From the NCBI GenBank assembly GCA_038496445.1, contig JALMLS010000075.1, forward strand, positions 355,435-419,434: 64,000 nucleotides of DNA. Reading direction: 5' to 3'. Each line of letters opens with the position of its first letter. The stretch's first letter is position 1. The position numbers were made by a program, and so were the translations under genes. The notes beneath the pieces were generated by a model. It worked only from the letters and a program-made list of their open reading frames with translations, had not been told where the DNA came from and made no database searches. Source of the stretch: Trichosphaerium sp. ATCC 40318 (Eukaryota > Protista > Tubulinea). Shown piece after piece: positions 3,005 through 61,626 of this stretch.

Positions 3005-3189
3005 GGATTATACAAAAACAACATTGCTCGTTAAAATTTTGGACAGTTTATGCTCCCGACGCTCGTACAATATGGAGGTAATTTTTTTCTGCGACGAATG
3101 GACGCTGATGGTTGTTTATCCTCAATAACTTCTATACAATCATCAACTCCACTCTCTTGTATTGCACGCGCTTTGGATCTTGTTAACAT
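2791..3189 (-). CDS. Small two-exon hypothetical protein (~108 aa), family member A
   Basis: Exon 1 MLTRSKARAIQESGVDDCIEVIEDKQPSASIRRRKKLPPY, phase-1 GT-AG intron 2997-3068, exon 2 CSHFRVKDIKPC...NIDVFPPQH*. Paralogous to 4985-5378. Confidence 0.75.
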
Positions 3190-4984
3190 TGGTTTTGAAA
3201 TGTTTTTTGTCGAGCTTGGTTAAAAAAACGAAATGCTTAATATCTATCCTCCCAAAAAAGGTTTAGAAGCTGGTTATTGCGTAAAAGGGCATTCGTTTCG
3301 TGTACCAAGGACTTAACAACACTTTTTTTAAAAAACGAAATGTTTTGTTTCCGTTTGTTTTACAAATGAAAAAACACATTAAAGCGTGAGCTGCTACTGG
3401 TCCGTGTTGTACTTACGAGTAAGTGTTAGATAAAGCGTTCATAAATTATTTACCTAAACGTCGCGGATTCAAATCTCAAGAAGCCATCAGGTGATCAATA
3501 TCAATATTTCCGTTGCCACGAAATTCAACAATGGCAAACCCGAAACTGTTAATGATCCGCAATATTTTAAACAAAGCCTAACAAAAAACTTTTTGAACTC
3601 ACGTGATACTATGTTATTTATAATACTTACCTACTTTATGTACACCTTGAAATCCATCAAAACGTACAGCTGAGCGCCCCATTTTTTAGTAAGTTTTTCT
3701 TCGCCAAAGCTCATCATAGTTTCCTTTTTGTTTTAAACATTTGCCGATACCGATGTTACTTAGGATCCTACGCATGCTTAAATATAGAACAAAGCGAATC
3801 AAGCCTAATTAGAAAAAAAAAAAGATAGTTTTTGGGTTCACAAGTGCTGGTCTACCACCCACGTGACTTTTATACTTTAGAGTGAGCATATTCTGGCTTC
3901 GCGGAAAAATAAAAAAAAAGTGTTGGATGGTTTGCAATAGTTCGTACGTTTTTTTAAACCAACGCCAGACTTCGCATTCACTGTCGAATAACAAAATTAC
4001 TAACATTCACGTGCCTTTGTGCCTTTTTGTTTGTAACAGTATTTAGTTATTTTGAAAATAGTCAGCGATTAACTTGTAATTGATAATGGACTATATGGTA
4101 CACAGTATAGGTGGCTTTATGACCCTGTCAATGAATCAATCAATCCTTCTTAGATAGAGTCTTTAACACAAGCTGGCCTTCGTGTCGCCTCTTTGGGGCT
4201 GTTTTAATGGTTTGAACCACGTTGCGAAATTAGCTCCACCGAAAATCAACAAACGGTGTAGCAGAGAAGGGAATGTACTTACCAACGATAACAGGGCTAT
4301 CCTCGCCTTTTTAAAAATAAAAGGTTCTTGCTTCTTGAGGCCAAGCCACCTCACTTTGTTAGGAGGCTAAAGCAGCCTTGCTGTGGGGATACCGCTTGCT
4401 TGGAATAATTCATATATTGGCAATCAGAATATCAATCAAGCGCAGAATATCACGTGCATGTTGAAGAGGTGTACGAGGTATGTATCGTATTGTTTATAAT
4501 CTGTTTGATTTTATTGATTCTTAATACACTCCAGACGTGTTTATCGTGGATTTTGCTCGCCTTGATTGTTCGTAGTTATAGATCGAATTAAATAAACGAA
4601 ATCACGCAAAAAAAGGAAGTACTAGTGTCAAATTCGCGCAATGCTGCGCTTTTCATGTCTACATGACACCTGGTGTCTTTTTAAAGGTATTCGTAGGATT
4701 AAGGTATATCGTATAAAGTTGTATTTCCAAATTGGGAGTTTGCTTAGTCATGGTTGTTACTTCAAGACTACCTAAGATTCAGACACTTGAGATACCCACG
4801 TGTTGACAATGCTAATAGCGTGTAGTAAACCATAAAAAATTCAATAAGAAGATTACCAGTCGTGAAGGCGTTTCAAGTGTTTTGCCGTTTATCTTTTTTT
4901 TTTGAAGTTTTTTTTGACATATATAATTCATTCAATCCTGAGCAAGAGGCGACCGCGACCAGAAAAAACTTGTACATATAAGTT

Positions 4985-10764: not shown

Positions 10765-11583
10765 GTGCGCAAAACTGCAATTTATTTAGTAAAAGAAAAC
10801 AAACAAGTACTTGATGTAACTTAAGTTAGGCAAACGATCCCTACAGTACATCAGGCCCAGTAGAAGGGTAATTAGTTTTATCTAAATCATTGATGCCTTT
10901 TTCTTTGCTTCAACATTTATGTCGTACTTACTCACATCTTAGGAATTTACCATTCATAGGACATATCACAATCATGAATTATTTTCCTTCACTTCAAATT
11001 CGCCCTTATTAGCGTTCTGGGTTTGTTTGTAATTATTAACCGCGAGTGAAATACAATTTATTCAAAGTACTGGCACCTTTATTGCTAGTTCCTTTTTTTT
11101 TCTTGTGCATAGTTGACAGTAGAGTTATAGCCAGATACAAAAAAAAAATTCTTAACTTGTGTTGCTATTAAACATCCACTCTAAAATCAAGCCAAGTGTC
11201 TAAACCCACATACACGTGCGATTTGTTTGTTTTGAATTTCAGTATTAAATTTGAAGACGCTTCCTTATTGTTTGCTTCATATTGGAGGCTAATTGTGTAC
11301 TCATAACTGTTAAGGACACTGATCCCCAAATTCGTGTTTTGTTTCTATATTTTATGTAGTTTTATTGTTATTTCAGCGAAATTCTCTTCAGTACATTTCG
11401 TCTGACTAATTCTCGTTTTCGCTTTTTTCACCATAAAAGCGAGTTGCAAACTGTGTTCTCTTCTTAAAAAGGAATCACCACAAGCAAATTCGCGTGGAAG
11501 GAACGTTTTAAACAGTTTAATACAACCATATGCCCGAAGGCAGTACAATAACTTCCAACCCGAATAAAACATTAAAAAACGCC

Positions 11584-12309
11584 ATGAGACTATCAGATTT
11601 ACCAGTAGAGCTTCATTTATGCATTTGCGAAACTAGCGCGGAAATCTACAAGCTGTGGCCCATTCTATGCAAGAAAACAGCTACAACTAGTAGGCACGAT
11701 AAACGATTAAACAAACACGGAACCTTTAAATCGTTTAACACCGAAACGGGTCGGGTAGTTAAGCAAGGATCCTTTAAGCATGGCAAAGAAAATGGTGTTT
11801 TTAAAAAATGGTCTGATGACGGACAGCTTGAATGTAAATGTAGATATAAGAAGGGTGTACTTGATGGTACGTTTCGTAAATGGACAGAGGGCGTATTAGC
11901 AGCAGAATTAAAGTACAACAAAGGTGTACTTTCGGGTCGAAAAGAATACGAAGAAGGAAATATTGTCAAGTCCATAAAATACTCCACAGGCAAGGACGGT
12001 GTAAAACGTGGCCTTTACAAAGAATGGTATACAAATGGTAACCAAAAAGCGGAGCATACTCTCGTTAACGGACAGATGGAAGGAATGATAAAGAAGTGGT
12101 ATCCGAACGGACATTTGAGGGTTGTTCATTTTTATAAAGACGCAATGTATTATGGAAAGTTTGAGAGTTGGTATGACAATGGTAACAAGCAGAAAGAAGC
12201 TTATTATAAGAAAGACTTACTAGATGGAGAGTATAAAACATGGTCACGTGATGGTGAGGCCACAGGTGTATACTGGTATAAACGAGGCAAGAAAGTAAGG
12301 GTCGAGTAG
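11584..12309 (+). CDS. Intronless F-box-like plus MORN-variant (YwqK/MORN_2) repeat protein
   Basis: N-terminal LSDLPVELHLCIC...LCK, then repeats GxYKxWYxNGxxxxxxxYKxGxLDG. AATAAA after the stop. Confidence 0.88.
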   Translation: MRLSDLPVELHLCICETSAEIYKLWPILCKKTATTSRHDKRLNKHGTFKSFNTETGRVVKQGSFKHGKENGVFKKWSDDGQLECKCRYKKGVLDGTFRKWTEGVLAAELKYNKGVLSGRKEYEEGNIVKSIKYSTGKDGVKRGLYKEWYTNGNQKAEHTLVNGQMEGMIKKWYPNGHLRVVHFYKDAMYYGKFESWYDNGNKQKEAYYKKDLLDGEYKTWSRDGEATGVYWYKRGKKVRVE

Positions 12310-14519: not shown

Positions 14520-17215
14520 ATGACGGAAGAGAACAAATGCAGTAATTGCGAGAGTCTGGGTAGACCATGCACTACTCTACGTCTCAGTTGGTCATTTTGT
14601 CCTAAATGTGGTGTAAAATTACAGCAAACGTACAATTTAGCTCCTTTATACGCCGTTAATACGCTTCCAGCATAGAAGAGGCCGTTCAAAACAATGAACT
14701 AGATGAGCCTCCAAAAAGACGTGCACCAATGCCAAACGCAATGTCTGCGCCTGTTATCGAGCCAACGAAGAGATTGGAGGCTCGCACAAAACCTCGCACG
14801 TTTAACAAATACAAAACAACGCGCAAAACTAACTTTCCTTAGCTCTCATAGCGCAAAAACAAACGTTTCGGGTAGAGTTACCACAAAGTATAGCGTTATT
14901 TTTTGAAAACGCAATGTTCTTACTTCTTATCCAGCATTATCAGAGGGTAGAGTAAAGTCTCCAAAACGCGGAAGGCTAGGCAACAAAGTCATAAAATACG
15001 TTAATCCAAAAAAATGGCGTGCAAAGGGTATACTATAGCTCTCTTAGCGTATAGCATTGTTAAAACCGTTACTGATGCTACTTTAGCGCAACCACAGACG
15101 CAGACGATTCCAGCGTCAGATAAGCCCGTGAAAGGGGTTGAACAATCTCCTAGAGCTAAAGTAATACTCCGAGAACTACCAATGTACGATTGGAGCTCAA
15201 CTTCTAAAACTGCTCTTTATATTATTTTGCGAATATACAGACTATGGAAACAACGTAATTTGGCGTAAAAAGGTGCTTAGAGCATGCACACAAGTCCTCG
15301 TATTTACATTATTGGAACTTTTTTAATCGCACCTAAACTCTTCATTAGTCGCACGGAAACTGCTGTAATACGTACACGTCATCGTTCTTCGTCTGCTAGA
15401 GATCATATGCACTCTATAAAGAGGCAGGAGAGCTTTGAGCTACCTCTACAAAAGCTTAGAAGGTATTGTTTTTTGACACCTAATTTCTTTATTTTGGAAT
15501 ACTTGTTGATTCGTTATCTAGATCTAACTCTTTCAATGATGGAGCTAAGTTATCAGCACGGTCTAATAATGAAGGTCCCCATACGGATAGGTATGTGTTA
15601 GCTGGAATATTGTATTTTTTGTACAGCTTGGCAAGTGTTTACAAACAAATCTTTTAGGCCTAGTCCAGCTTTATCGCGCTTTAAACCAAAGCCTGTTGAA
15701 TGGCGTATTGAACCACCATCTGGCACTGCACCTTCTCTACCACAAGGACCCATATCCTACCAAGTAGCTTCACTATTTGAGCAAATGCGTCTAGCTCTTG
15801 TAAGTGATATTATAGCTCAAAACCAAACTATGCTAATTTCAACCAAAAATTTGACTGTTTTAGGCGCATGATGATGATGCAGAAATAGCAAGGATAAAGA
15901 TACAATTAGAAATAGTTAAAGGAGATATTAGACAGAACGGATTAACTGGATTTGATTCAAAACGTACACTTCAAAACACTTCATTGAAATTTCTTCAAAA
16001 TATGAATTGTCTTCACTTTTATTCGAAGAAAAATATTTAACTAAGTACACCTCATAGAACACGCTATAAACAAAAATTATAGAGGTAATATTAATGTATT
16101 ATCTTCTCTACGTACTGGAGAAGAAGATACAGCAACAGAACAGCCTACAAAAAGTCACACATCACCTAAAATAGCACATACGTTGCTACAGAATACAATG
16201 GTTAATGACTTAAAGTCAAAATCAGATAATGGTACAACAGGCAGCTTGGCCCGTAGTACAGAAATCAAGAGACCTGATAAAGAGGTTCCTAGTATTAATC
16301 CATTATCGAAGAGTGTTGGTGCTAAAAAGCCTTCAATATTACCTCCTAGACCTAGTCTTATGGACTTGAGAAAACCACCTATTTTATCAGGACCACCAAA
16401 TAGGCCTGTGCCAAGTGTTGGTCTTCCTAAACCTTTAAAACCACCTCCTAATCCTCCACCTGGTCGTATGGAGCCTATACTTAAACCTGCAAGAGAAAGA
16501 CAGAATGCAAAGAGTCAGGCCGTGCTTGCATTGCGTGCTAATGTAGTTGGAAGTTCAATTAAACCAGAAACGAATTTTAAAGTACGTATAACCCAAAACA
16601 AAAAAAAGAGAAAGAAATGAGAATTACTTTGTTAGTTAATGCTTGTTTTTGTTTAGGTGTATCATATTCGAGTAAATTTCTGTGATAATTCATGGACTGT
16701 ATATAGAAATTATGGTCAGTTCTTGTTTCTGCATAATAAGGTACAAAACTGTTCGAATTTAAGTTAAGTTTTTGAAATACTTTTCAGTTATTTTTCAAAG
16801 ACTCGCCTGTTGTAGTCTTGAATTAAATCTATATTTTTTAAACATCACAATGGATAACACGCTTAATTCAAACAAAAAATCTCTTTGTGTCGCTCAGATA
16901 TCCCTGTGTTTTCAAAAGAAAGAGTTACTATTAACAAATTTGAAGTGCTTTTATCTCACCTTTGTGTTATAGTTAAAAGGAGCTAATATACTACCGGATA
17001 ATGTGAGTCTTCCTCAAAGACGTTCTATACAGAGTAGTAGTCAACTGAGGATTGGAGACACAAAGGGTTTTGATAAAAAGATGGCAGATTACCTTGACAG
17101 CATAGTTGGTATGTCACGTTTTTCTTTCTGTTCTTTTTGCTAATTGTACCAAGTTCAAAAAGGTTTATGGGAAGCTATCGAATTGAGAAAATTTCTAAAC
17201 ATGCCTGTACGTTAA
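14520..17215 (+). CDS. Multi-exon protein: N-terminal zinc ribbon, proline-rich middle, C-terminal PX domain
   Basis: MTEENKCSNC...FCPKCG at the start. C-terminal VYHIRVNFCDNSWTVYRNYGQFLFLHNK/LK...LPQRR...MADYLDSI...LRKFL fits a PX domain. Confidence 0.75.
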
Positions 17216-17477
17216 ACCTTGAAAAAGGGCGTTCGTGGGAATAATCATAAGTAACAACAATGAATTTTAAAATGTACACTAATAATAAAAAATATCAGAC
17301 CAAGAATAAGGTCATAAATTAACACTTAGCTTGCAAAATGTTACTGACAGAAATAGAAAGAAATACTTTTTAGTGATAATGAGAATGTACGATTGAGGAA
17401 AAAAAAACAACAAACTTTTAAGAAGATCTCAAAGCCAACAAGAGAGTTCAAATCAAAAAGTTAATTTTTTGTTGATT

Positions 17478-18975
17478 TCAATACATGCACTCATTCAGAT
17501 CAGGATCAGAGTCGTAGGCATTGAACCTTCCATAACTCTCGCGCATGTTCAGTTCACATACTCCTTTTTCGCAAGCTTCACAAAACTCAGACATGTGAGG
17601 CTTACTTCCATCATTGAGAGGCTTTACGCCAATCCTGCAAAAGACATTATATTTTTGCTGTTTCTCGTTTCTGACGCACCTTCTCCGTGAGCTTCGCTTA
17701 TTTCTCCACATATAGTCAGGATGTACGTATACTTTACAGTCTTTGCAAGCTTGTCTATGTTCCTTTTTACCTTTGCTTGACATCCACCTTTTCAAGCAAC
17801 GTGTGCACTTAAAAAAAGAAAAAGATTGTCTCCCTTTGAACTTCTTTCTTTTAACCCATTTTCCTTTAATGTTTTCGAAAGGAAGAGGAAGAGACTTTCG
17901 TTCACGCCGTTCCTTGTCATTTTCATCACTATCATCGCTGCTTGACATGCCTTCGTCATCACTGCCCGAACTGTTTTCATCGTTAGGCGCACTATAGCGG
18001 TAGCGTGAATAATATGAGCTTCTTTCAGGCATTGGCGTTAGCTTGATGTCGCTTCGCAGTGAATCAATCCTAGAACTTAAACTTGTTGATGTGCCCGATG
18101 TGCAGTCGATAATGGTTCTTCTTGGGTTTTTTGTAGGCAATGGCAACAACACTGTGGTGTCAGGTACGTCGTCACCTGTAAGGTCAATGAAATTTCGTCT
18201 TTTTGTAGGAATAGTCGGTTCTTGTGTGGTCTTTTCTTCTCTGCTAGGAGGTAAACCCATAAACTCTCTGGCGTCATCCAACGTCTTAAACTTCTTAAAC
18301 CTTGCTCCTGCGAATTTATGAACTTGCTTTTGACATTCAGCCCTAAGAAGTAGGTCAGGACAGTCGTAAAATAATCTCAAAACAAAAACCCTCTAAGAAA
18401 AAAGAAGCACGTGCCATGTTCCATAGATACCAGGTTGGAACCCTCTTAATACAGCGTAATATCCAGTCACTGCACAACCTCTCATTACAATAGGCATTTT
18501 ACTCGATGTACCGCTCTGTACCACGTGGGGAGTACGAATTTTTTGGTGTTTATTGAACACCGGAGGAGTGTAAATTTGCTTCATAACTTTAACAGCATTT
18601 CCATTGCGCTGAAGCGCATTTGCATTTGCTAACAACTTCCTCCTTGCCAATGCATTCTTACGGTTCTGTTCAATCTACATAGACGTCTTAGAGAAGAAAG
18701 CCTAATGCTGGAAAAACAAAATAGAACCTTTACTAATTGAGCTGCTGTAAGCGGTTGCTCTTTCGTCTTAAGTCTCTCTAAGGCTGCCTTTCTGTTTTGT
18801 TCTATCTGTAACGCAAGAATTCGTGAATACAATGTTTTCTGTATTTGTATACCAGTGCTAACTGTTCTGGAGTCAAAGGGTCCTCCTCTGGGGCGTTTGC
18901 TGGACTAGAAGCAGAGAGTCGTGCGCGTTTGGCAGGATTTACGCATTCGGTATTACTGAGGGCTTTTCTCTTCAT
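17478..18975 (-). CDS. Nuclear protein: 2x RPA32-binding-type helix + RNase H1 N-terminal hybrid-binding (Cauli_VI) domain + zf-3CxxC
   Basis: MKRK...PAKRAR NLS. LTPEQLAL/IEQNRKAALERLK and LTAAQLVK/IEQNRKNALARRK. YYAVLRGFQPGIYGTW/AECQKQVHKFAGARFKKF. FKCTRCLKRWMS...QACKDC...PHMSEFCEAC. Confidence 0.85.
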
Positions 18976-19459
18976 TGTTGCTGCGTCAGATTGCTTTTAG
19001 TGGGTTAATCAAAGACTCATTCTACAAAAAAATAACCGCTACTTACAATGCTTGTAATCGATAAAACTACGCGTGGTGGTATTCCTGGCGATCTTTAAGG
19101 AAGATCATTAGCTTTAGTCACAAGTTTTAAGGACTCTTCAAAAAAGACTTGTTGTAACGTACTGGTATTCGTTTTAGAAAACGACAAGGTTGTATGCCTT
19201 TTTTTGAAATCACTTTGTTTGTTTTGTCTCTGACAGCCCATTACTTAACCACATAAGTCGCCTTTTTTTTTTTGGTTTGCCATCGAAAAATACCTCCAAG
19301 TTTCCTTTAAGAGTTTGGCTGTGACAAGAATTGAACTCAGACCTTAACCTTTGCTGTAAACAAGCTTCTCTGTTGACAAAAGATCATTTACAATTTTATT
19401 TTGTACAAGGAGAGGTAAAAGAGGTTGATATTCACACGTTCAAAGAAAAGATCACTCAT

Positions 19460-45650: not shown

Positions 45651-45864
45651 TTTGTAAAATAAACTTATGTTCGCATAAAAAGTGGTATGGTAACTTACAA
45701 GAAAGAAAAATCCACAAAGGAGAAAGAAGTTGGTGAGTAGCAAATTGATAGAAAAAGTTACACAATTAAATATGATTGTCGTCAAGAAAAGTAGTCTACG
45801 TCTTTTTTTTAATTTTGTGGTACTTTAAAGATCCACAGAAACTCTTTACTTGGCGTTTGTTTCA

Positions 45865-47112
45865 ATGGAACCGAGGGGCGACTATTCCGAACAAAATGAG
45901 ACCAAATTAATCGATACTGAGCTTTTAGACATACCAGCAGAGATACTAGCTCACTTACTATCATATTTGAAGCGTTCAGATCGATTTTCTGTATCTCAAA
46001 GTTGTAGAAGACTATTGGAGGTTATTCACCATCACGTTGGATACAGCTACATCGTTGTTCGATCTAGCGCCAGTTGTTCTCGTCTATCAAAGAGTCCTCT
46101 ATTAAAAAACACTGCAATAGTCTTTTGGAATGGCGGACAAGACTCTGATCTAGCTTTTCTCTCTGGGGTTTACTCTTTGACAGTCTACAGCAATAGTAAC
46201 ATTACAGATTCAGGATTGAACCATATTTCCGGTGTATCTAAGTTGACATTGTCTCATTGTACAAGAATTACAGACTCAGGACTACTACCACTTGTTGAAC
46301 ACCTCAAACACATTAACTTGTTCAAAAATTCTAAAATCACCCCAAATGGATTTAAACATCTTTCTGGTGTACCTAGCATATCTATACAAAACTGCACAGA
46401 TGTAAGAGATGAAGTACTTAGTGCATGGTCCGGTGTACATACCGTTGATGTGAGGTTAAACCGTTTCATTACAGACAAAGGTGTTTCATCTTTAGCTGGC
46501 GTACACACCATAGATTTGAGTTGGTGTAGACACATAACAGATACAGCTATATCTGCCTTAAGTGGTGTTAAAATCATTAAGCTCATTGGCTGCCAAGGTA
46601 TAACTGGCACGTGTATGAAGGACCTCAGTGGTGTACATACCATTGACTTATCAAATACAAAAGCAACAGACGATTGGATTACACCTCTTGCTGGTGTACA
46701 TGAGATCATCCTTGAAGAATGTGCGGGTATCACTGGGACGTCTATGAGCAGTCTTGTAGATACAAACACCATTATCTTGACAACATGTAACAGTTTGAAG
46801 GATTGGGTTGTTCCACTCTCTGGCGTACACACAATTGATCTTGGATACTGTTTGGGTATTACTAGTGCATCAATGGAGTGTATTGTAGACGCATACAATG
46901 TTAATTTATGTTACACAAATGCAACAGATGAGTGGCTTGTTCCTCTTTCTAAAGTCTCAGAAATAAAACTGGTGGGTTGCCATGGAATAACAGAAGAAGG
47001 TATTGATGCTTTAGTTAGCATACGTAAAATCACATTATCAAAGACACATAAGGTTTCAGACGAATGTATTGCTGCCCTTAAAGAAAGAGGTGTAAACGTG
47101 ATTTTGTCTTAA
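45865..47112 (+). CDS. Intronless F-box + LRR protein (GVHTIDLS-type repeats)
   Basis: LLDIPAEILAHLLSYL...VSQSCRRL F-box, then repeated LSGVHTIDLSxCxxITD units. Confidence 0.92.
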   Translation: MEPRGDYSEQNETKLIDTELLDIPAEILAHLLSYLKRSDRFSVSQSCRRLLEVIHHHVGYSYIVVRSSASCSRLSKSPLLKNTAIVFWNGGQDSDLAFLSGVYSLTVYSNSNITDSGLNHISGVSKLTLSHCTRITDSGLLPLVEHLKHINLFKNSKITPNGFKHLSGVPSISIQNCTDVRDEVLSAWSGVHTVDVRLNRFITDKGVSSLAGVHTIDLSWCRHITDTAISALSGVKIIKLIGCQGITGTCMKDLSGVHTIDLSNTKATDDWITPLAGVHEIILEECAGITGTSMSSLVDTNTIILTTCNSLKDWVVPLSGVHTIDLGYCLGITSASMECIVDAYNVNLCYTNATDEWLVPLSKVSEIKLVGCHGITEEGIDALVSIRKITLSKTHKVSDECIAALKERGVNVILS

Positions 47113-60355: not shown

Positions 60356-61626
60356 ATGCACAGTGTTACAAATGTGCTTGAATTTCCACCAGAGGTTATT
60401 GCGAATATTCTACATCATACAGAAGCAAAAACAAGATTCGCAATTGCTCAATCATGTAGTTTGATGGCTGATGTCATGCACGATGTTGTTGGATATGAGG
60501 ATGTTTATATCAAGCGTGTTCCTGACATTCTTAAGATAAGACAGTACAAGGGGATAATGAATAACAGTAGAGTCGTACTTAAAACAAAGGAAAACCATAC
60601 TTTGTTTTCATTGTTATCTGGGTGTCGCGTAATTGATGCATCTGTAAGTACTATTCGCATTACAGATGACGATCTAGAAGAGCTTGCAGGTGTCCATTGT
60701 ATTGATCTTCATGCTTGTAGCAATGTTACCGACAGAGGTATAGTTGCATTAAAAGGTGTTCATGCCATAAACCTAGAAGACACTCATGTGACAGATGCAG
60801 GTATTAAACAACTCGCTGGTGTTCATACTATTCACCTTCGCGAAACAATTATAGATGACGGTGTAATAGCACTTGCAGGTGTTCATAATATAGACCTTAC
60901 GCTCACTTCAGTGTCAGATGAAGGTGTCAAAGCTCTTGCAGGCGTACATACCATTCACCTTGATGGTACTTCAGTGACTGATGAGGGTATCAAAGCGCTA
61001 GCAGGCGTTCATAGTATTGATCTTGCAGATACATTGGCAACAGATGAAGCTCTCATAGCATTAAAAGGTGTACATGCGATCAATCTCTTTGGCACTAAAG
61101 TAACAGATACAGGCATAAAGGCGTTGGCAGGTGTTCATACAATTAGCCTCGATGGTGTTTCAGTGACTGATGAAGGTATTATAGCACTTGCTGGGGTTCA
61201 TACCATTCACCTTGAGGATGCAATGGAGGTTACTGATGAAGGCATCAAATCTCTTGCAGGAGTACATATGATCGCCCTTGGTGGCACTAAAGTGACAGAT
61301 GAAGGTGTCAAAGCGCTTGCAGGCGTTCATACCATCGGTCTTACCAATACATTAGTTTAAAGGGAATCCATATGATTGATGTTCATGGCACTGAAGTTAC
61401 AGATGAAGGCATAATAGCTATTTATGGCGTTCAATCTGCTCATAATATTGGTATTGAGTGTTGCTCAGTACCAAATAGCAGCATAGAGGGACCACAATAT
61501 GTTAAAGTGGCAAGATTCGAACAATATGAGATGCCAATTGATTATTGGTTTGATACTTTTTGGAGGCGTATAAAACCAACAAAACAGTATATTTTAAGGC
61601 CTTTAAATCCAGTCAGTAACTTGTAA
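60356..61626 (+). pseudogene. Intronless F-box + LRR gene (LAGVHTIxL repeats), disrupted by a frameshifting deletion near 61357
   Basis: F-box LEFPPEVIANILHH and ~22-aa repeats. After TLV the expected TDEGVKA is missing, and the repeat resumes in another frame as LKGIHMIDVHGTEVTDEG. Confidence 0.8.

Follow-up and report, generated by a model that had tools for sequence, protein, structure and literature searches.

A nuclease-free Trichosphaerium gene that joins tandem RPA32C-binding-like helices and an RNase H1-type hybrid-binding domain to a 3CxxC zinc ribbon

The window analyzed here is a 64,000-nucleotide (nt) stretch of DNA from Trichosphaerium sp. ATCC 40318 (assembly GCA_038496445.1, contig JALMLS010000075.1, positions 355,435 to 419,434) with a GC content of about 37%, taken from a genome assembly of 70.3 Mb in 642 contigs. 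The subject of the study is a spliced gene on the minus strand of this window, which encodes a protein of 441 residues by the RNA-confirmed model with three introns. The protein carries, in order, a putative nuclear localization signal (NLS), two tandem helices resembling those that bind the winged helix of RPA32 (RPA32C), the hybrid-binding domain (HBD) of RNase H1, a linker and a 3CxxC zinc ribbon, and has no nuclease domain. An earlier note, made from the letters of the sequence, had proposed this order of modules and had named RNA-seq as the means of finding out whether they belong to a single transcript. An in-frame TAA lies 24 nt upstream of the start codon, and the parts of the gene, in window coordinates, are as follows.

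17478..18975, minus strand: the gene, from the ATG at 18975 to the TGA at 17480-17478, read from the sequence
18853..18975, minus strand: exon 1, 41 codons, with the start codon, the NLS and the first half of repeat 1 (LTPEQLAL), from the sequence and an X1 contig
18806..18852, minus strand: intron 1, 47 nt, GT-AG, phase 0, abutting IEQNRK of repeat 1, from an X1 contig
18728..18805, minus strand: exon 2, 78 nt or 26 codons, with both junctions in spliced contigs
18675..18727, minus strand: intron 2, 53 nt, GT-AG, phase 0, abutting IEQNRK of repeat 2, from the joint 18674/18728 in X1 and X2
18415..18674, minus strand: exon 3, with the remainder of repeat 2, a basic linker and the N-terminal half of the HBD (from 18461), from the Cauli_VI match and cDNA contigs
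18343..18414, minus strand: intron 3, 72 nt, GC-AG, phase 2, inside the codon of a conserved HBD tryptophan, from the joint in X2, X3 and X4
17478..18342, minus strand: exon 4, a single open frame with the C-terminal half of the HBD, the linker, the zinc ribbon, the tail and the stop codon
17635..17679, minus strand: probable intron 4, 45 nt, GT-AG, in frame and with no internal stop, proposed from sequence and spacing in a part of exon 4 that no RNA contig covers

The splicing pattern was read from contigs of four public runs (X1 to X4) over positions 17200-19300, where holes in the coverage prove nothing. Intron 1 was placed by a contig of X1 that covers exon 3 and then exon 2, and whose loose end of 25 nt is identical to the end of exon 1. 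The joint of intron 2 was present in two runs from two studies (X1 and X2), while that of intron 3, which skips 18342-18413 with a 2-nt ambiguity, was present in three runs (X2, X3 and X4) from one sample. The 5' splice site of the latter is GC and not GT, an unusual GC-AG intron within the HBD. Exon 4 was covered by a cDNA contig from 18341 to 17713; the spliced contigs reach no further, and 17478-17712 is uncovered. Exons 1, 2 and 3 were joined in one contig, and exon 3 was joined to 629 nt of exon 4 in a 745-nt contig that takes in the HBD, the entire linker and the first two CxxC pairs of the zinc ribbon, indicating that the modules lie in one transcript. The RPA-type helices, the HBD and the zinc ribbon are thus encoded by a single transcript, and the check named in the earlier note came out in favor of one gene. 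An artefactual fusion of two neighboring genes was considered and rejected, since the spliced contigs bridge the module boundaries.

Several features of the runs and of the upstream region were recorded beside the gene model. One X2 contig extends 17 nt into intron 1 (window position 18822, minus strand) and continues in sequence resembling a template-switch oligo; the loose end looks like the reverse complement of what we take to be the Smart-seq oligo. The small runs X1 to X4 are therefore probably cDNA, and the X2 contig suggests a cDNA 5' end at 18822 within intron 1, from an internal start site or unspliced pre-mRNA. Intron 2 was retained in one X3 contig (18583-18731). The source of X1 is 95-99% alike and carries a T>G change on the plus strand at 18551, which replaces a lysine of the disordered linker (VFNKHQK) by glutamine; the spliced gene is thus also expressed by a close relative or strain. 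An ACGCGT box like the MluI cell-cycle box is found at 19069-19074, about 95 nt upstream from the start codon; the hexamer is not enriched in the window, where 10 copies were observed and 8.1 expected, which is the level of chance.

Exon 4 likely contains a fourth, in-frame intron at 17679..17635, which would shorten the protein to 426 residues. The borders of the segment are AAG/GTGCGT...TTTTGCAG/G (the slash marks the splice position), and it falls within the zinc domain. When the 45 nt were read through, the spacing between the family-conserved Asn and His in that domain was 35 residues and when they were removed it was 20, compared with a median of 19 (5-95%: 15-24) among 144 relatives; the segment also had low confidence, by the predicted local distance difference test (pLDDT), in the AlphaFold2 (AF2) model of the domain. 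Counting this one, the introns of the gene are 45-72 nt long. The architecture is the same with or without the fourth intron, and its modules are located as follows.

18922..18972, minus strand: bipartite NLS-like stretch KRK-x11-KRAR, residues 2-18
18767..18876, minus strand: repeat 1, a SMARCAL1/UNG2-type RPA32C-binding-like helix, residues 34-54, spanning intron 1
18636..18751, minus strand: repeat 2, an RPA32C-binding-like helix, residues 60-80, spanning intron 2
18258..18461, minus strand: N-terminal HBD of RNase H1 type, residues 139-182, found with Cauli_VI and spanning intron 3
17910..17984, minus strand: acidic Ser/Asp/Glu patch in the linker, residues 274-298, seen in the translation and matching no family
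17556..17891, minus strand: 3CxxC zinc ribbon of ZAR1/ZCCHC24/RTP4 type, residues 305-416, from profile, alignment and fold

The stretch KRK-x11-KRAR follows the classical bipartite pattern and would serve as an NLS, as had been suggested before. It is followed by two 26-residue repeats, LTPEQLALIEQNRKAALERLKTKEQP (residues 34-59) and LTAAQLVKIEQNRKNALARRKLLANA (residues 60-85). Each is split by a phase-0 intron directly before IEQNRK, giving LTPEQLAL/IEQNRKAALERLK and LTAAQLVK/IEQNRKNALARRK; the earlier observation that both copies are interrupted at the same position was thereby borne out in spliced contigs. Exon 2, at 78 nt, equals exactly one repeat period, which fits an origin of the repeats by duplication of an exon-intron unit. 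The two copies are identical at 43 of 78 nucleotides and have 14 residues in common, nine of which are written with different codons, and introns 1 and 2 are dissimilar by eye. The codon differences indicate that both repeats have been maintained at the protein level; judged from this comparison, the duplication happened long ago and constraint acts on both copies.

The repeats were compared with SMARCAL1 and UNG peptides as printed in the literature. The human SMARCAL1 peptide 5-30 served as an RPA32C ligand (PMC11109976), and the RPA-binding helix of mouse UNG is LVRIQRNKAAALLRLAAR (PMC10810282). Repeat 1 is identical to SMARCAL1 5-30 at 12 of 26 positions and repeat 2 at 14 of 26. For repeat 2 the local alignment score was 63, compared with 24.9 +/- 4.1 for composition-preserving shuffles (z 9.4). 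In UNG2, the residues N77 and R84 make contact with the RPA2 winged helix, and mutating them to Asp abolishes binding (PMC8053108); the equivalent asparagine, and the arginine seven residues after it, are kept in both repeats. When the 70-Mb genome was scanned with a degenerate DNA pattern encoding I[EQ]xN[RK]xxALxR, two occurrences were found, both of them in this gene, and the reversed control gave 1 and 2 matches genome-wide. The likeness to the SMARCAL1/UNG2 helix, which the earlier note had pointed out, is real and strong at the level of sequence. The host genome also encodes a potential partner, an RPA32 that has an OB fold and, at its C-terminus, an RPA_C winged helix (contig C45, about 250150-251210). 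A phmmer search against the PDB sequences gave no relevant match for exon 2, exon 3 or the exon of the host RPA32C, queries that are too short or divergent for such a search. The exons of the gene contain no HARP or SNF2 ATPase domain, so that the likeness to SMARCAL1 does not extend to membership of its family.

The HBD is divided between exons 3 and 4. Pfam Cauli_VI (PF01693) matched the end of exon 3 over positions 2-15 of the model (E 0.0048, 17.6 bits) and the start of exon 4 over positions 18-44 (E 5.1e-8, 33.5 bits, compared with a cut-off of 21 bits). After splicing, residues 136-182 gave a gapless alignment across the junction with the HBD from an intronless RNase H1, at 60% identity (E 4e-15). 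The latter gene lies on a metagenome contig of 30% GC (3187-3996), and the segment ECQKQVHKF is identical in the two proteins. The second half of the HBD alone matched 3BSU, the structure of the human HBD, at E 2.3e-4, the segment ARFKKF being the same in both. Mutations W43A or KK59/60AA compromise RNA:DNA binding by the human HBD (PMC10639055); in the alignment to 3BSU the equivalents of W43 (GTW/AEC) and of K59/K60 (ARFKKF) are kept. The HBD is complete and keeps the residues needed for hybrid binding, and it may prefer hybrids over double-stranded RNA (dsRNA). The intact RNase H1 N-terminal domain that had been described thus stood up to profile, alignment and structure comparison. So did the absence of the catalytic domain, since a profile search found no RNase_H (PF00075) in the exons of the gene or elsewhere on its contig (C32).

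Three genes with an HBD were found in the genome, the RNase H1 itself (C53:182509-183523, with HBD and RNase_H), an HBD-PLD-nuclease gene (contig C39) and the gene described here. A phase-2 intron inside the codon of the conserved Trp/Tyr is common to all three, which argues that the HBD exon pair was reused. The GC donor is confined to the present gene, where the site reads GCACGT, compared with GTACGT in the RNase H1 gene. In the PLD paralog (about 233600-234500, minus strand) the HBD reads FYAVAVGRQPGIY...EDCKKQV, with the intron in the same codon, and is accompanied by a PLD-type nuclease domain with the HxKx4D motif (HLMHLKAMIVDD).

Between the HBD and the zinc ribbon lies a low-complexity linker, as predicted; in the translation it is an acidic, serine-rich stretch of phospho type. 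The ribbon is preceded by an N-terminal LPLPF..G.W extension. HMMER, run exhaustively against 1.84 billion representatives, gave 361 relatives of the domain at E<=1e-3 and 69 at E<=1e-10. All 361 match residues 296-418 only, and they are typically short proteins of 75-458 residues. The named sources are protists (Rhizamoeba saxonica, Selenidium serpulae and Mylnosiga fluctuans), the best named relative being amoebozoan; metagenomes and Logan assemblies supplied the others. A family alignment of 150 sequences was made from the query and the 149 best of the 361 relatives. C333, W340, C353, C356 and W366 are invariant in it, and C336, H403, C408, C411 and C416 nearly so; a P..G.W strand upstream is also conserved. 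The query keeps the CxxC pairs C333/C336, C353/C356 and C408/C411 together with H403, C416 and W340.

The assignment to a C-terminal 3CxxC finger in the earlier note held, with one qualification. The three CxxC pairs and the conserved His, Cys and Trp residues are present as claimed, but the query falls just below the gathering scores of both Pfam models (PF13695 and PF17180), with 25.0 bits compared with 27 for one of them and 19.6 compared with 23 for the other; we therefore place it in the 3CxxC superfamily as a divergent member and not as a certified Pfam member. At E<=0.01, the aligned sequences matched PF17180 (Zn_ribbon_3CxxC_2) in 119 of 150 cases and PF13695 (Zn_ribbon_3CxxC) in 100 of 150. 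The gene is the sole member of its zinc-ribbon subfamily in the genome; the only other 3CxxC gene there, an open frame of 149 residues (C71:82708-83043), matches PF13695 canonically with 71 bits.

The AF2 model of the zinc domain, built with the family alignment, had a mean pLDDT of 81.6. The top solved fold match was human ZAR1's RNA-binding domain (9jko, Foldseek probability 0.98, E 0.025), which the family profile also matched by sequence (E 0.019). VIA-align gave Z 5.7 over 73 residues for 9jko and Z 4.0 for human Shiftless, with unrelated rows at or below 2.4, a Z below 8 being no proof when taken alone. The nearest ESM Atlas clusters were ZCCHC24-like and RTP4, and the domain is grouped with ZAR1, RTP4 and ZCCHC24. 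The 3CxxC domain of ZAR1 is its RNA-binding domain (PMC12799850), and that of RTP4, which binds nucleic acids, is the determinant of virus restriction (PMC12431671); by analogy, the present ribbon may bind RNA. Five of the relatives also match Pfam UPF0515, the Shiftless family, and together with the second-best fold match this hints that the zinc region of Shiftless belongs to the same superfamily.

Other nucleic acid-binding modules accompany the ribbon in its family. In the alignment of 150 sequences, zf-C2H2_jaz (dsRNA-binding fingers) was found in 22, zf-met in 14, zf-CCHC in two and KH in one, and in 22 of the 149 best relatives the JAZ-type fingers precede the ribbon. JAZ fingers bind both dsRNA and RNA:DNA hybrids. 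The pairing of an A-form-duplex binder with a ribbon therefore recurs, and can be regarded as a recurring design in which the HBD here fills the slot of the duplex binder.

The company kept by these ribbons also keeps alive an explanation in which the protein is directed to RNA. It would then be an mRNA regulator or defence factor that recognizes structured, viral or retroelement RNA, with the HBD on dsRNA and the ribbon on RNA, while the N-terminal helices serve another partner or oligomerisation and not RPA. In its favor, relatives of the ribbon are fused to JAZ or zf-met fingers that bind dsRNA, to CCHC knuckles and to KH, and the fold neighbors are ZAR1, Shiftless, ZCCHC24 and RTP4. In addition, the 3CxxC domain of RTP4 restricts RNA viruses, human RTP4 bound viral dsRNA (PMC12431671), and the genome holds many retroelement copies of RNase H. 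We consider this explanation unlikely, because the helices match the consensus of RPA32C ligands far beyond chance, and do so twice, the NLS-like stretch points to the nucleus, and the HBD retains residues that are used for the DNA strand of a hybrid.

All of the modules are known; their combination is new. No HBD-like or RPA-motif-like pattern was present in any of the 152 zinc-ribbon relatives retrieved, and no HBD was found within 5 kb upstream of the closest relative of the zinc domain (P0001) on its contig. A word search with exon 4 gave no match, and a scan of metagenome contigs gave only the ordinary intronless RNase H1 and no HBD with a 3CxxC ribbon. Neither a protein with HBD and 3CxxC nor a nuclease-free one with RPA helix and HBD was encountered in the protein search, the word search, the metagenome scan or the top-ranked papers of the literature, in agreement with the earlier remark that the architecture was not recognised; the full-length spliced protein was not among the queries, the genome's own proteins are absent from the collections searched, and close relatives may be missing from them too. 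To our knowledge, the cellular proteins with an RNase H1 HBD that have been studied in connection with R-loops are all nucleases, HBD proteins without activity are found only among engineered sensors, and no class of natural nuclease-free R-loop reader has been described.

The reading that we prefer, tentatively and with a confidence somewhat short of even, is that the protein is a nuclear, non-enzymatic, nucleic acid-binding adaptor. The two tandem SMARCAL1/UNG2-type helices would dock it on the winged helix of RPA32, that is, on single-stranded DNA (ssDNA) coated with RPA, while the HBD would grip the adjacent A-form duplex, preferentially an RNA:DNA hybrid, and the C-terminal ZAR1-type ribbon would hold RNA. 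The presumed targets are structures in which a hybrid lies beside RPA-coated ssDNA, namely R-loops, RNA-primed gaps at replication forks and hybrids at resected breaks. Since it has no nuclease, it would not remove such structures but mark them, shield them or hand them over. An action at R-loops would have a parallel in RNase H1, which is reported to be recruited and activated by RPA on R-loop ssDNA (Nguyen 2017, cited in PMC8653787). A more specific version, possible but doubtful in our estimation, is that the protein is a natural nuclease-free reader of R-loops that engages the hybrid through the HBD, the displaced RPA-coated strand through the helices and a free RNA tail through the ribbon, all together, and stabilises or flags R-loops or RNA-primed gaps without resolving them.

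Several observations weigh against the adaptor reading, 1) the binding of the two helices to RPA32C is a prediction from their likeness to known ligands, 2) the RPA32C of the host is divergent, with 27 bits to Pfam RPA_C and no PDB match by sequence, 3) no HARP (SMARCAL1) or UDG match was found in the genome, where the HARP search had no positive control and the abundance of introns leaves absence unproven, 4) the TIPIN locus of the same genome has no obvious RPA motif, 5) HBDs also bind dsRNA, 6) apart from this gene, members of the zinc-ribbon family go with RNA-binding modules (JAZ, zf-met, CCHC and KH) and not with DNA repair and 7) the gene is single-copy and was seen only in this genome and in one source that is 95-99% similar.

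The adaptor reading has a signed variant, in which the protein is an antagonist of RNase H1 that competes for RPA-marked hybrids and so stabilises R-loops or primers. The protein has the HBD found in the RNase H1 of this genome, down to the position of the intron, but lacks the catalytic domain, and RNase H1 is recruited to R-loops by RPA (Nguyen 2017, cited in PMC8653787). The variant is purely inferential, however, and we regard it as quite improbable.

The same modules could also make a sensor or restrictor of reverse-transcription intermediates, which would recognize the hybrid and flanking ssDNA of retroelements or viruses with RPA as co-receptor. The HBD-PLD nuclease paralog suggests that a toolkit aimed at hybrids exists in this organism, and the genome contains at least 33 RNase_H matches, most of them in long open frames typical of retroelements. 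The protein has no effector domain, however, the gene is present in one copy and shows no sign of having expanded, and no link to a mobile element was found within about 2 kb on either side, the only insertion noted in the window being a truncated long interspersed element (LINE) near 59.8 kb. A role as such a sensor is improbable.

If the adaptor reading is correct, the protein would offer a model for how both faces of an R-loop or an RNA-primed gap can be read without destroying the structure, and the RPA32C motif of SMARCAL1/UNG2 type would be modular and present outside animals and fungi. If the protein is instead directed to RNA, the poorly understood ZAR1/ZCCHC24/RTP4 ribbon family would extend to a large protist branch in which the ribbon is paired with duplex-binding modules.

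Other loci in the window were noted in passing. A long single-exon open reading frame at 11530-12309 encodes a MORN-repeat-like protein, and those at 45850-47112 and 60356-61360 encode F-box-like proteins in which leucine-rich repeats of the form AGVHTI(D/H)L are numerous.

Compared with known systems, the ribbon is like those of ZAR1, ZCCHC24, RTP4 and Shiftless (PF13695, PF17180) in its three CxxC pairs with an additional His and Cys, but is part of a subfamily, found mostly in protists, that has an additional PPxP..G.W strand on its N-terminal side, and the protein has neither a membrane anchor nor a disordered N-terminus of ZAR1 type. The protist proteins with JAZ fingers and a 3CxxC ribbon (for example P0113 and P0139) are similar in having the same ribbon subfamily at the C-terminus with a duplex-binding module before it; here, however, the HBD replaces the C2H2 JAZ or zf-met fingers, and RPA-type helices are absent from theirs.

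The repeats keep the consensus L-T-x-E-Q-x3-I-E-x-N-R-x2-A-L-x-R-R of the SMARCAL1, UNG2, TIPIN and XPA helices. In those cases the helix is carried by a translocase, glycosylase or fork-protection protein, whereas here there are two tandem copies fused to nucleic acid-binding modules. The protein is like eukaryotic RNase H1 in its complete N-terminal HBD, with the needed Trp and Lys-Lys and the intron position of the RNase H1 of the same genome, but its catalytic RNase H domain is missing and RPA32C-type helices and a zinc ribbon are added; the human enzyme reportedly meets RPA with no helix of this type. The engineered R-loop sensors RHINO and GFP-HBD are likewise catalytically inert proteins built on the HBD of RNase H1. 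Unlike these sensors, the Trichosphaerium protein is natural, has one HBD instead of three and carries what are presumed to be RPA- and RNA-binding modules of its own.

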